Shown here in pieces: positions 38,101 to 43,842 of a stretch of DNA of 64,000 nt. Origin of the DNA: Penicillus capitatus. Its lineage: Eukaryota; Plantae; Chlorophyta. The stretch spans positions 175,101-239,100 of the forward strand of contig OZ287701.1 of NCBI GenBank assembly GCA_965649825.1. The letters run 5' to 3'. Numbering within the stretch: the first letter of the stretch is position 1; each line of letters begins with the position of its first letter. The notes beneath the pieces are model-generated. The model was not told the DNA's origin, did no database searches, and saw only the letters and a program-made list of their open reading frames with translations. The translations under genes were made by a program, and so were the position numbers.

Positions 38101-41100
38101 TCGGAAAGTACGTCCCCTTGAACAACGTATGCTCCAAGATGCCTTCGACGCCGCCCAGAGCCTGAATCACATCCGTACGGTAGTTATTAAGATTCCATAG
38201 CTTTCCATCGTGTCGTTGATGCGTCCACCAAAACGGATTCTGCTTCAGCACCTGGAACTGCTTAAACTCCTGACGGATTCTCCATCCTCGATCGTAAGCC
38301 AGCGTATGTCGATCCTTCTGGAAGAGGGTATTGATCCGAGGGATACCCCGATCCCACGAGTCCTCCAGATCTTCCAGCGTCAATCGCCGATTCTGTGCCT
38401 TGGCTTCCTCCTTCTTCAGAGCGTATTCGCTCCAGACGCGCTCGGAATCGATGAACTCCGATTCCCAAGGCTGGATATAGCGATAGAGATTGGGAATCAA
38501 CTGATCTTCGTCGTGTGACATGCCTGCCCTGAAATGCGTGACGCCCAGGTCTGTCTGCTGCATGTATCGCAGATCGGATTGGGGGATGAGGATGTGACCC
38601 ATGCTCAGCATACCTAACCCGCCGATCTCTTTCGGCGCATAGAAGACGACAGGTGGAAAACGGGAAGGCATTTTGGAATTGAGTCCAATTTTGATCCGCG
38701 TCTGAATCTTGTTCTCGCACTTGACCAGCAAATCCAGAAGCTCCTGTGTATGGACGGAGGCCTCTCTGAAGTAGGTCATCAGTCCAATCAACGCCGTATT
38801 CCATTTGTTGGCGATTTTGGTAAAGGTCGTCGATCCAGAGGACATCAGAATCTGCCGCACCCTGTTCTCGAACGCCTTCATCGCCTCATCATCGATTCTG
38901 AGAAACGCCTGAGCCGTACGCTCCTTCGTATGATTGTTCTGCAGACTCCAGACGCCGTCTTTCGAGGCAAAGCCCTCTGCCGACATGCGGCACTTGGGCA
39001 GCAAACGCACTTCGAAGCCGCACATAGAGAAGAGCAGGTTTGGATTGTCCTGACTGTAGACGCTGACAAAACTGGAATCCCAGTCCAACGTCGTGATCGA
39101 ACGCGGCAGGCGGTTCTTCATGTCCCAGAAAACGGCACGGCCCAGATTGACGTCGTGCTTCATCAAACGCATTCTCGCATCCCTCGGCCAACATTTCTTA
39201 TTATTGTACCCGACGATGTTCTCGTTGTTGGGGTCTGGATGCTCGGTGAGGTAGCGCTGGATCAGATCTCTCGCCTCTTCTGCCGTAAATCGGAAGAGGA
39301 TGTGAATGCGATCGATGTAGGTCTGGAAGAGACGGATGGGATGACGGGTTTCCGTTTCGACATCTCTGAAGCTCAGGAACTCGTTTGGCATGTTCGGTGC
39401 TCCAGCGATCTCCGATGCCCGTGTCAGACCCAGCAACAGCAAACTCAACACCAACGCGTAGTACTGAGTGATGAAGGACGCGAACTGCAGGCCGCGGATG
39501 AGACCGTAGACATTCGAATGCTGCATATCTTTGTAGGCAATGACCACATTGTTTTTCCCCGTCATGTAATCCGCGATGTTGGCGTCGACGATCAAACGGA
39601 TCAGCCTAGGAACGCGCCCTCAGGTAAGGCAGCGCAACGTGGGCTACGGTTACCTGTTAAGCATGATGATATCGACTTTCTCCCACATCTTGACAAACTG
39701 CGACTGCATCATGACGACGCAATCGCCTTCGGCCGTATCCCAGATGTCCGTCATGTTGTTGATCGCATGGCACCACTTGTAGACCAACTGAGGCGGCGGC
39801 TCGGCATCTCCCGGTTTGATCCACGCCGGAAAGAGGTGACGTTTCTCTGCCTCGAACCACAGATACTGATCCAGATAGGCATCGGTGATCTTTTCGAGCG
39901 GCTCGATTTCGTAGACAGGGATCAGATGGGAATAGAGATCCATGAACTCGATGGACACCTCTTTGAACTGACGCATCGACATGAGATGGCGTTTGATGCG
40001 ATTCAGTGCCTCGTGGGGATTGTCGTATGCCTGTTCGACCAATCCCAGCTCCTCTCTCTGTTGCTGATTCAGTCGTACGGCCACGGTGTACTGCTCCTTG
40101 AGACGTTCCAGCGCCAAGATCAGCAATTTGGTATCGTGCTTGTAGTTGATGGGCGGAAAGGGAATGGGTGAGAATTTGCGTGACTCCAGCCAGTGGACGG
40201 TGGTGGTGTAGATACCGACCGCTTCTTCAGGGCTGACATAGGGACCGTCCTTTAAGTAGTTGTGCTGTCTCTCTTGTTCGGCTTTGAGATAGAGACGTGT
40301 CAATCGTCCCAGATTCTTGCGGCAGACGGTCTTGTCGACGGTGGCGCCACGACGGATGCGTTCTCGATTGTAGTGTGCCACGTTGGTCCACCAATCTGCT
40401 TTCTGCTTGACGTAACGCAAAATCATGTTCTCAACGGGAGTGGGCAATCCAGGGACCTTCCATGGAATGTTGGCCTTCCAGCAGTTGTGCACGAGGAGAC
40501 CATTGGCCAAATAGAACAGAGGTGAGCCGCCAAGTTCAAAACCGGCATACGGTCCAATGCCTTTCTCGGTTATTCTGAATGCCACATGTCTGTGATGTGA
40601 CAGGTCGCTCCTGTTATCAAACGATTTCTGCTTGCAGGGGAGGAGCTCCATTCCGCCGCCAAGAAGCTGAGCCGTTTGCTTGGGTGCCTGGGAAGCTGCT
40701 GGGAATGTGTTGTCCACAATGCCGTCTGTCGGTTGCTGAGAATCCGCCAGATGAGCACGCAACATGCGGCACCGGTCGGCATCATTCGGGCGGCGTTTCT
40801 TGTACAAGAGATAGCCCTTCACACTGACCTTCCATAAGGGAGAAGGCTGTTGCTGCATCTCTGCCGCAAACGCTTCTGCTGCCACACATGCCTCCTCCAC
40901 CGAAGCACACCCTGTCTTCGTCCTGTCACATCGCAGCTGATCACCGTCAACTGTTTGTGATGGGCTCGGCTTTCGCTTGCCATCTGTAAGATCTGCAGCA
41001 CAATCTTCGGCTGCCTCGACAGTCACATCAGCAGTATGTTGGCTATGACGTGATGCCTGCTGGACATAGGCAAATGTTCGGCAGGCCATTCCGATATGCT

Positions 41101-43842
41101 CTTTGAGCTCATCATCTCCTGACTCGTATGACTGAAGCTGTGGGTAATGCACTTCGAAGTAACCGTTTTCCGAATGCTCAATCCTCACACTGATCTGCGG
41201 ATTCACCAGGACCAGTGTGTGACGCGAATTGCAGCTGAAACCTTCTTCTGCATTTTCCCACATCCACTCAGCCACCGTGCTTTCGCCAGTCACATCATCT
41301 GCTGCCACAACATCGATGGCATACATCACATCATCACCCTGCATGGTGCTCAGCACCTCGACGCCTTTGCCATCGACACCCAGCACACGATCGCCCACAG
41401 CAATGTGCCCTGCCTCACGTTCCCTGCCGTCTGCCATCCGAACCAGCGTTGTTGGACCGAAGCAGCGCCAAGCTTCGCTGAGATGCTGCAAAATCGTCCG
41501 GGCTTTGTTCTGTTTGACACCTTCGGGCATCATGTCCAGAATGTCGTGCATCACGGCGGCTCGCAGTTCCAAATCGTAATGCGATTCGATGCGCTGTTTG
41601 GTCACCGTTTTGGCGATGCCTTTGGACTGTCGTCCCTCAAACTGACGCGCCAGCAGATTCCCCAACCATCGTTCGAGCAAGGGAACAATACCTCGAAGGA
41701 AAAAGAGCCACACACGCCACATGGGCGCCCAGAATCCGACACCAGGTCCCTTGCCAACAGGCCCCGTATTAAAACGGTAGTAAATCAGATGCTTGAGATC
41801 CTTGCACATACGAATCTGTCGCATCAATCGATACTTATACCGATACATCCCTGCAGCACACAGAAGGCTGAGATGATGTGACAGCAAACATAGACGGCAC
41901 CTGTGAGCTGGCCAACGTGTGCAAAGATGTACTGCAGTCCATCTGCCAGCTGAAAGGCATCGACATTTCCCAATCGAAACTGCACGTTGGCATCCACCAC
42001 GAGCTTTGTCAGTCTCAGAATCTCGCGGCACAGATGGAACGCATTGCCAAAACGCGATTTCTTGCGTTCTTTGGTCGTCAGGGTCTTGACCGGCTTCAAA
42101 TTGAAATTGTAGTCCAGATGCAAGTAATTGAGATTCTTGCGGTGGATCAAAAGGTTCAACATATTGTAACCCTGACGACAGACCTGCAATCCCGCTTCGA
42201 CCCAGTCCAGTTCCGTACTCTGAAAAAATTTCGTCGCCTTGAGCGCACGGAGCAAGTATTTTTTCTTCACGTTTTTGGGAGGGCGATGGTGGAGTTTGTT
42301 CAGGACAAAATTCTTCAGGAGCTTCTGATAGCTGACACGGACTTTGACGGGATACCCCGGAGGGCAATGCTCTTGGAACCAGTCATTGACCAGCGGAATG
42401 TCAATCGCGCGACGCATCTGACCCGATCGCAGATTGAAGGGACGCGGTGCCCAGAGCAGCGCAATACCGGAGGCGGTGTTATCTGTATAGAGCGGCACAT
42501 TATGCAGCAGCGGCTCCATCTCATCGGGCATATCGAAATCGTCCTCCTCTTCTTCCTCGTCTTCCGCCTGCGGCTTCTTCCCACCTTCTGTCTTATAAAA
42601 GGCGATCGGATGGATCAGGGGATCGTAGTAGTAAGCTGGCAGATCTGGATCTTCAGTCTTGATGTACATGACCATCGGATAGTGGTAAGGACTCAGTCGG
42701 ACTTTGCGCGGGCGGTTGTTGTAGAGATAAGGAAAAGCGACTTTGTATTCCGTCCGTATGGGCGAACGGATGATGAGTTTGTTGATGTCGTTAAACTCGT
42801 TCCAGTCTTCATCCCTTGTGTCCATGTCTCGGTACAGGGGCTCGTACTTGGGACCGCCAGGAATGCACATGTTTAAGCTCTTGGCCGTGATGAAGCTGTT
42901 GACCTCGAAGAGATAAAAATAGTTTTGGTCGCTCAAGTCACTCAGAAGCTGTCCAGCCAGTCGATAGAGCGTCGACATGATCGGCAACGGGAGTTTCCAT
43001 TTTCGATAGGAGGGCCCGTTGACGAAACGCGTGTAGATCAAAGGCTTGGAATCATAGAACCAATCGTAAACGGCGGAGTCGTCTTCTCTGTCCAGTTCGA
43101 GTTCGATCGCTTCGAGGGGATCCAGTTCGATGATGTTGTCGGCGTAGTCGAGCGGCGGCTCTTCGTCGTCAAAGGGCGGAAAACGCATGCGCTTGAAATG
43201 TCGTCGATCGCGTTTCTCACGTCGCATCATGATCCACATCGTACCCCACTGAGCAATGTAGACGGGTTCGATGACAAAAGGGATCTCGTTGACGAACGTG
43301 ATGGCCCCGGTGATGTGATAGATCACCTTGACATGACGCACCTAACAAGAGTGATTTGAGTGAGAAATGATGTGACGTGATGTGACAGCTGCTGCGCTGT
43401 ACCTGTTCCCATGGCATCGGCATGTTCTCCAGGAGCTTGTAAACGGCATGCGGGACGAACTTGAGAGCACCCAGATACACGCGCTTGTCATGGCGAAACT
43501 TACGCGACGCCATATCTCCGTGATCCTACACGAACGCACGCACCCATCGCTCAGACCAAGGAGCAAAGAGGACGGCGCCGACTTTGATGATTTTGCGCAC
43601 GTGTTCCGGTGGCATATCTTCCTTCTGTGCCTCGACGTATCCGAAGCGTCGTTTATCGCCGTAGCGACGCGCTTGTAGCTGTCCCCATTTCTTAGACTAC
43701 AAGGGCGAAGAAGTCGAGATGGGTTGCTGCTCGACAAGGGACGCGCCTTTTCTTGGAGTTGTCGTTGCTCGGCTGTATGAAAGGGATCTTCCGGCAGAAG
43801 ACTTGGTCCGGCAGTACCGACCGGTTCCTCTTCGATTTCCAT
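35122..43842 (-). CDS. PRP8: Pre-mRNA processing factor 8 (U5 snRNP core protein), ~13 short introns, contains an intein
   Basis: Near-continuous similarity to PRPF8 from QEK...KWGQLQ through [19 protein letters not shown] and [20 protein letters not shown] to [15 protein letters not shown]. Stop at 35122-35124. Confidence 0.99.
40484..41464 (-). mobile_element. PRP8 intein, 327 aa, class-1 (Cys1...His-Asn/Cys+1), no LAGLIDADG endonuclease
   Basis: A 981-bp in-frame insertion between SEAWR and CWKANIPW. Block [14 protein letters not shown], block [12 protein letters not shown], block [15 protein letters not shown] and block G ANGLLVHN, followed by Cys. Confidence 0.97.

Follow-up and report, generated by a model that had tools for sequence, protein, structure and literature searches.

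Inteins in nuclear genes outside fungi are rare. The element analysed here is a 981-nt in-frame insert in the PRP8 gene, located in a 64,000-nucleotide stretch of contig OZ287701.1 (assembly GCA_965649825.1, positions 175,101 to 239,100; the whole stretch is referred to as the window, and all positions are given in its numbering), and it was compared with the PRP8 inteins described so far. In the literature searched, only two green-algal PRP8 inteins were found. One green-algal nuclear intein is listed in Additional file 2 of Green et al. 2018, in Auxenochlorella protothecoides Prp8 (XP_011399604), and the C-extein printed there starts with CWKANIPW, which is the same insertion point as in the window (PMC5784728). 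The other is Bathycoccus Prp8-d (Monier et al. 2013). Among the further insertion sites, site b was defined by Monier et al. 2013 from B. dendrobatidis JEL423 PRP8-1 and one Capsaspora intein, and was placed at alignment position 735, near but outside the RNA-contact core 770-2173 (PMC3749507). In Anaeramoeba, a Prp8 intein is located at EAFR/CWKA, which its authors call a site known to harbour inteins elsewhere (PMC10710043). Among solved structures, 1gpp is domain I of PI-SceI; it comprises the splicing domain and the DNA-recognition region inserted into it, and lacks the nuclease domain.

The insert in the window was located on the minus strand at 40484..41464, where it comprises 327 sense codons (981 nt) without a stop, from CFGPTT to LANGLLVHN; a stop-free run of 327 codons has a chance probability of about 1e-7. 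It lies within the long open reading frame (ORF) 39650..42367 (-) and splits the PRP8 sequence QHLSEAWR from CWKANIPW, the nucleotide flanks reading GCTTGGCGC on the N-extein side and TGCTGGAAG on the C-extein side. The junction sequence gives Arg720 (CGC, 41465..41467) as the -1 residue and final N-extein codon, and Cys (TGC, 40481..40483) as the +1 nucleophile that opens the C-extein. Joined without the insert, the flanks (406 aa) were aligned gaplessly and end to end to the solved Prp8 chains of Chlamydomonas, human and fission yeast, and they also matched the budding-yeast chains (E=4e-184); the closest solved chain was 8xi2_A (E=1e-263), from the Chlamydomonas reinhardtii C* spliceosome (PMC11833078). 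The insertion junction corresponds to R782|C783 in Chlamydomonas, R718|C719 in human and approximately 791|792 in budding yeast, and the flanks were assigned to PROCN by Pfam (E=1.5e-123). For the whole gene (35122..43842, minus strand), a model was built from the ATG at 43842 to a stop codon ending at 35122. Its 15 exons are separated by 14 introns, each 42-62 nt long, of which intron 1 is GC-AG and the others are GT-AG. According to this model, a precursor of about 2663 aa would give a mature protein of about 2336 aa, and the N-extein has exactly 720 residues. The intein-bearing exon spans 39654..41850, and the introns next to it measure 50 nt and 48 nt. At fungal site a (FWEKA|SGFEE, 38057..38086, minus strand), the sequence reads on without interruption, and the site is empty.

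The 327 residues were then compared with known domains and structures. Pfam returned Hom_end_hint (PF05203; E=1.5e-19), which scored 71 bits where 32 are required, and phmmer against the PDB matched the initial 130 residues to PI-SceI of yeast VMA1 (E=2.4e-7). An AlphaFold2 (AF2) model, built from a seven-sequence family alignment, was confident at residues 1-55, 72-135, 183-236 and 289-327, which cover the Hint fold and the DNA-recognition region. Using this model in Foldseek, the top fold match was PI-SceI domain I (1gpp; E=4.8e-12, template-modelling (TM) score 0.70), while the Prp8 inteins of C. gattii (6mwy) and C. neoformans (6mx6) gave TM scores of 0.86 and 0.82, all normalised to the target. 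Translation, Pfam domain, PDB match and fold thus describe 40484..41464 as a PI-SceI-type Hint module without endonuclease. The set of class 1 splicing residues is complete (Cys1, block B His82, His326, Asn327 and Cys+1). Block B reads GFSCNSRH, with CNSRH at residues 78-82 and Asn79 replacing the usual Thr; VMA1 likewise has Asn (N76) at this position (PMC6805012). In nine family members, C1, N79/H82, H326, N327 and C+1 are invariant, and all of them are present in the window and in the two related loci described below. The surrounding blocks are conserved in the same nine-member, same-site alignment: C1, F2, P4, T6 and M10-G13 in the block with the catalytic Cys1 (41426..41464), C78, N79 and H82 in the block whose TxxH motif reads NSRH (41207..41245), and Y306, G308, L311, P315-F317, H326 and N327 in blocks F and G (40484..40600), which end with His326 as penultimate and Asn327 as terminal residue.

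Between blocks B and F, no Pfam match to LAGLIDADG, Hom_end (PF05204) or LAGLIDADG_3 was obtained at E<=1, and the insert is therefore a mini-intein. With an in-frame interruption of the host protein, a Hint fold with blocks A, B, F and G and all catalytic residues in place, it belongs to the class 1 inteins. On the basis of its sequence, it is very probably a real, splicing-competent class 1 mini-intein in a PRP8 of the green lineage, and we regard it as highly likely that it is of the PI-SceI/VMA1-Prp8 type and sits in frame in nuclear PRP8 at the known SEAWR|CWKAN site. This assignment is carried by the observed anatomy, homology, catalytic residues, allelic site and coding-type conservation. 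The initial annotation of this locus had been made from the letters alone and is confirmed in all that it describes: the stop-free, in-frame 981-bp insert in PRP8 ending LANGLLVHN just before Cys was found in every element on the minus strand, block B (CNSRH) and block F are present, the placement after Arg720 agrees with the modelled N-extein, and so does the N-terminal location in PROCN with an empty canonical site at 38086..38057. Its call of an intein, for which it had suggested a Hint profile search of the 327 residues (the PF05203 match above), is borne out, since the domain match and the predicted fold agree with the catalytic residues and with the coding-type conservation, and its description of the host protein as algal fits the nearest named relatives of this PRP8, which are green algae.

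To collect relatives, a HMMER scan of 1.84 billion representative proteins was performed with the intein and yielded 93 matches. The full scan was required: a word-indexed homologue search with the intein alone gave no match. An exact look-up of the 724-aa ORF product of the window gave no record. The eight best matches (P0121-P0127 and P0133, E 1.5e-28 to 1.6e-7) are PRP8s, some complete and some fragmentary, in all of which an intein occupies the identical place, and they share the pattern HLSEAWR|CF.P.T..RMADG ... PLFLL....VVHN|C[WY]KAN. Among them are full-length relatives with a PI-SceI-type Hom_end domain (PF05204; P0122, P0125 and P0124) and mini-inteins (P0121 and P0123). According to the alignment, the window intein keeps the Hint blocks, a segment resembling the DNA-recognition region (AAEAF...W.VS...RMLRA) and a remnant ahead of block F (G.ELLPCKQK), and a core of about 250 endonuclease residues is cleanly deleted; it is therefore derived from a homing intein by deletion. 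Residues 137-182 (40919..41056) form a variable, probably disordered insert with a predicted local distance difference test (pLDDT) score below 50 at 137-180. Residues 183-237 (40754..40918; AAEAFAAE, LWKVSVKGY, RMLRA) form a subdomain resembling the PI-SceI-type DNA-recognition region (pLDDT 72-90), in which W211, V213, M234 and R236 are invariant in the family. In the subsequent linker (40601..40753; pLDDT below 50 at 239-288), which is the endonuclease position in the relatives, only the distal remnant is left when it is aligned with P0122, P0125 and P0124. As a separate observation on these proteins, P0121, P0128 and P0129 (3637 aa) are eukaryotic PRP8s with several inteins each, a pattern resembling that published for Capsaspora and Anaeramoeba; P0121 is occupied at the SEAWR|CWKAN site, as is P0123, and P0129 is empty there with other sites occupied.

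The same intein was found at the same codon in two further loci, L002 (ENA ERZ25074695, 724-kb contig), which matches 13 kb of the window at 99.44% identity, and L001 (ENA ERZ26696514, 599-kb contig), which is collinear with the window at 82-87% identity. The intein is hence present in three independent assemblies. For the comparison with L001, exteins, intein and real introns (the first 12 introns modelled) were treated separately. Exteins were 92% identical in nucleotides with 4 gap columns, at a synonymous divergence (dS) of 0.42 and a ratio of non-synonymous to synonymous divergence (dN/dS) of 0.003. For the intein, these values were 83.5%, dS 0.49 and dN/dS 0.24 (0.15 in blocks F/G), with indels of 15, 3, 120 and 30 nt, i.e. 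four of four in multiples of three, and with differences at codon positions 1, 2 and 3 of 28, 31 and 78. The 120-nt in-frame deletion removes 40 of the residues 137-182 from L001. The introns were 73% identical, and where gaps occurred their totals were mostly not multiples of three; all 12 retained their GT/GC-AG ends at the same positions in L001. Since dS of intein and exteins is similar, the intein was present in the common ancestor and has been inherited vertically since; and with an extein dN/dS of 0.003, this PRP8 copy is a functional one.

Towards L002, the intein drifts fast and its catalytic residues are untouched. The intein had also been considered as a divergence hotspot relative to L002, since it diverges by 1.63% where non-coding DNA diverges by 0.62% (p=0.0025), which was rejected: the value equals the synonymous divergence of the exteins of about 1.6% and is read as near-neutral drift. 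A metagenome scan for the alleles of close relatives, using a 25-mer of the N-flank plus TGCT, retrieved one contig, L008 (JGI Ga0138259_1085851, 2586-2610), and no close relative, whether occupied or empty. L008 carries a distant PRP8 (about 70-74% nucleotide identity) with an empty site, and a search with the exteins gave no intein-free PRP8 nearer than 87%. Past the 25-mer query, L008 is identical to the joined flanks of the window over about 44 nt; because it was retrieved by exact match, this is biased evidence at best for nucleotide conservation of the target site.

The window itself is nuclear eukaryotic DNA with a GC content of 50% and very short introns. For the 406-aa region around the site, bit scores of 877 (Chlamydomonas), 840 (human) and 799 (Brassica) were obtained. 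Over the first approximately 400 PRP8 residues, Auxenochlorella shares 77% identity, Rhizopus 73% and Salpingoeca 70%; for the 277-aa C-extein, the values were 86% (Chlamydomonas), 84% (Auxenochlorella) and 81% (human). No genes related to photosynthesis or plastids were seen among the ten longest ORFs of the window. Two of the neighbouring ORFs, 6249..7952 and 15372..17270 (-), are paralogues joining von Willebrand A and C-type lectin domains, an unusual architecture which might help to place the host; in L002, a Spond_N ORF is located upstream of PRP8. A further ORF (56326..57234, -) strongly matches the WD40 domain of Prp19 with E=1e-62, which is below the model's own cutoff, and may encode another spliceosome factor, located about 13 kb away from PRP8.

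A spliceosomal intron that is unusually long and by chance open and in frame would give the same reading frame, and PRP8 itself contains an intron of 42 nt that is stop-free and in frame (36789..36748). The 981 nt exceed the 14 introns of the gene 16-23-fold, and in all registers allowed by the repeated TGC no GT/GC...AG was found at or within 3 nt of the intein boundaries, so that neither the boundaries nor the length are those of a spliceosomal intron, and the insert is under coding constraint. It holds a significant Hint domain with an intein fold, it has homologues with the same catalytic residues at the same codon in other eukaryotes, and it differs from L001 with a dN/dS of 0.24, third-position bias and in-frame indels, as opposed to the 73%-identical real introns with their mostly out-of-frame gap totals. 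Given this coding constraint and real introns of 42-62 nt, the intron reading is very unlikely, to the point that it can practically be neglected. Separately, a short intron within the intein ORF was considered, a 48-nt GT..AG candidate around GTCACATCA at 40601; it was rejected because it would delete a family-conserved beta-strand and because the GTCACATCA motif occurs in exons too. Less easily dismissed, and still quite unlikely, is a decayed intein that is dead for splicing and is either tolerated as a permanent insertion in PRP8 or located in a non-functional copy. Its endonuclease is gone, about 95 residues are predicted to be disordered, and its recent evolution towards L002 was nearly neutral. 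Several points weigh against the preferred assignment as a splicing-competent intein: the mean pLDDT of the AF2 model is only 65.7, with residues 137-180 and 239-288 of low confidence or disordered; relative to the near-identical L002, the intein has 9 non-synonymous and 7 synonymous changes, i.e. close to neutrality, and the exteins have no amino-acid changes; the GC content at third codon positions (GC3) of the intein, 0.54, is below that of the exteins (0.67), which together with the near-neutral L002 divergence indicates weak constraint on much of the intein; the 64-kb view leaves room for an intein-free PRP8 paralogue elsewhere, which would also fit a non-functional copy; and the green-algal host is our best guess from the similarity of PRP8. 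Retention of the 981 nt in the mRNA, splicing activity and essentiality in single copy are predictions from the sequence. Against a decayed intein, no splicing residue has been lost in the three lineages or in the family at large, dN/dS in blocks F/G is 0.15, and an extein dN/dS of 0.003 over a dS of 0.42 reflects very strong selection on this copy; a 327-aa insert between invariant PROCN residues would also hardly be tolerated.

The identity of the site was weighed against the suggestion of the initial annotation that an independent invasion of a possibly uncatalogued position had occurred. This could easily be overlooked as a known site, since the letters in use are inconsistent (b, d and E): WR|CWKAN is b in Monier (PMC3749507) and 'E' in Green 2018 (PMC5784728), and one sentence of PMC10710043 calls it 'd' and VMDL|CQVF b, though VMDL|CQVF fits Monier's d. 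Residue numbers of sites b-g are given only in figures of the papers (PMC6805012 etc.), and the letter b was inferred here from position 735 and the extein strings of Green 2018, because the published labels conflict. The flanking residues are nevertheless explicit in the literature (CWKANIPW in Auxenochlorella, EAFR/CWKA in Anaeramoeba, site b at 735), the insertion point is SEAWR/C[WY]KANIPW and all nearest relatives, including the eight best matches, are allelic, i.e. at the same site. The site is therefore very probably the already catalogued InBase/Monier site Prp8-b, and the window intein is an additional member of a known allelic family and not a new site; that an uncatalogued site was invaded independently is extremely unlikely. 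As the window intein is no nearer to Auxenochlorella (36% over Hint and DNA-recognition columns) than to Capsaspora (40%), a separate horizontal acquisition of this known allele into the lineage is possible. Two further statements of the initial annotation have to be toned down. That the site lies in the region cradling the RNA core is overstated, since Monier et al. 2013 put site b near, not within, the RNA-contact core. That RNA splicing in this host would depend on protein splicing is a reasonable inference, which is not special to it, as the same holds for every Prp8 intein host and is discussed in PMC6805012.

Some observations on the PRP8 DNA were made alongside. The longest identical nucleotide run between window and L001 across the 7-kb spliced PRP8 coding sequence has 95 nt and spans the intein junction (extein 41509..41465 and 40483..40434, -); the 573 runs average 11 nt, the second longest measures 79 nt, and the rough post-hoc p is 0.005-0.014. 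Several codons in this run end in A or T despite the extein GC3 of 0.67, and distant taxa vary normally there. Intron 1 of PRP8 (43746..43697) is apparently GC-AG in both the window and L001, and a naive ORF translation runs through the 42-nt intron 36789..36748, adding 14 spurious residues. This 42-nt intron is located five codons past AKWK|TAEE, the new Anaeramoeba site, and intron 37742..37699 lies two codons past VMDL|CQVF, the Bathycoccus site d; in the endonuclease-bearing hosts L003 and L004, the PRP8 frame breaks about five codons past the occupied site, suggesting a putative intron. Introns near Prp8 intein sites recall the published idea of intron-intein exclusivity, although with 14 introns chance is possible (rough p 0.08). 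The motif GTCACAT(CA) occurs in 4 of the 14 PRP8 introns, in one of them twice (43386, 43376, 41882, 36772 and 35432), at least once in extein exons and once in the intein (40601); it might be branch-site-like or derived from a repeat.

If the assignment as a splicing-competent intein holds, the 14 short introns would be removed after transcription and the 981 nt would stay in the mRNA. The resulting precursor of about 2663 aa would splice itself, starting with an N-S acyl shift of Cys1 at the Arg720-Cys bond, followed by trans-thioesterification, by which Cys+1 would receive the N-extein. Asn327 would then cyclise with the help of His326 and free the intein, and an S-N shift would rebuild the native Arg-Cys peptide bond of PRP8. 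The ancestor presumably belonged to the same allelic family and was a homing intein of full length, with a LAGLIDADG endonuclease. The window intein has lost the endonuclease domain and with it the ability of homing, and it has been passed on vertically within the clade. It would be kept because, in an essential gene, neither an imprecise deletion nor a failure of splicing would leave a working product. For the Prp8-a intein of Cryptococcus, a role as a conditional switch has reportedly been proposed. By analogy, the endonuclease-less intein of the window might be retained as a redox- or metal-responsive switch on PRP8 maturation, and hence on spliceosome assembly, an idea which we consider unlikely and put forward as a speculation. 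The purifying selection (dN/dS 0.24) persisting over a dS of about 0.45, the retained and otherwise useless DNA-recognition subdomain and the oddly invariant 95 nt of surrounding extein DNA are consistent with such a switch, rather than a demonstration of it.

With the intein of the window, a green-lineage clade of three related genomes is added to the PRP8 inteins known from green algae, and another independent loss of the homing endonuclease is documented among the inteins at this site. How strongly a stranded intein is constrained can usefully be gauged from orthologues that are occupied and have diverged (dS about 0.45), and endonuclease-bearing and endonuclease-less alleles across taxa form, together with the three related occupied genomes, a natural series. 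The view of where inteins live in PRP8 is unchanged, since earlier publications already cover this site and this family, as well as the notion of RNA splicing depending on a protein-splicing step.

Among the known systems, the inteins of Cryptococcus neoformans and C. gattii Prp8-a (6mx6, 6mwy) share with that of the window the host protein and the lack of an endonuclease; they differ in that they occupy site a, in the 1585 loop some 800 residues further downstream, have only about 170 aa and lack a DNA-recognition region, and they are 11% identical to it. Bathycoccus Prp8-d likewise resides in a nuclear green-algal PRP8, at VMDL|CQVF, by our count 87 residues downstream of site a, a position that is empty in the window PRP8. 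PI-SceI domain I (1gpp) is the best match among solved structures in both sequence and fold and has the inserted DNA-recognition region and the block B Asn in common with the window intein; its host protein is a different one, and PI-SceI has an active endonuclease domain II. The Anaeramoeba intein, which was compared by its flanks only, has the same flanking residues, but its host is a metamonad and its inteins have been linked to giant viruses (PMC10710043). The best published homologue is Capsaspora owczarzaki Prp8-b (Monier et al. 2013; Green et al. 2018; E=8e-30 plus 1e-15), which is collinear with the window intein over Hint, DNA-recognition region and blocks F/G, and the LLPCKQK remnant is shared as well. 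Its host is an opisthokont, and at 479 aa it is a LAGLIDADG intein of full length, as opposed to the 327-aa mini-intein described here; the equivalence of the two sites is judged by homology and by position 735, which fits residue 720. In host, gene and site, the closest counterpart is the Auxenochlorella intein, which is likewise found in a nuclear green-algal PRP8 at the same site, belongs to the same family (BLASTP E=3e-20) and shares the motifs CF.P.T.VRMADG, GF.CNSRH.LVL and YVGFEL.GSPLF.L....HN; it has 441 aa and is scored as endonuclease-positive, whereas the intein of the window has 327 aa and its endonuclease core is deleted.

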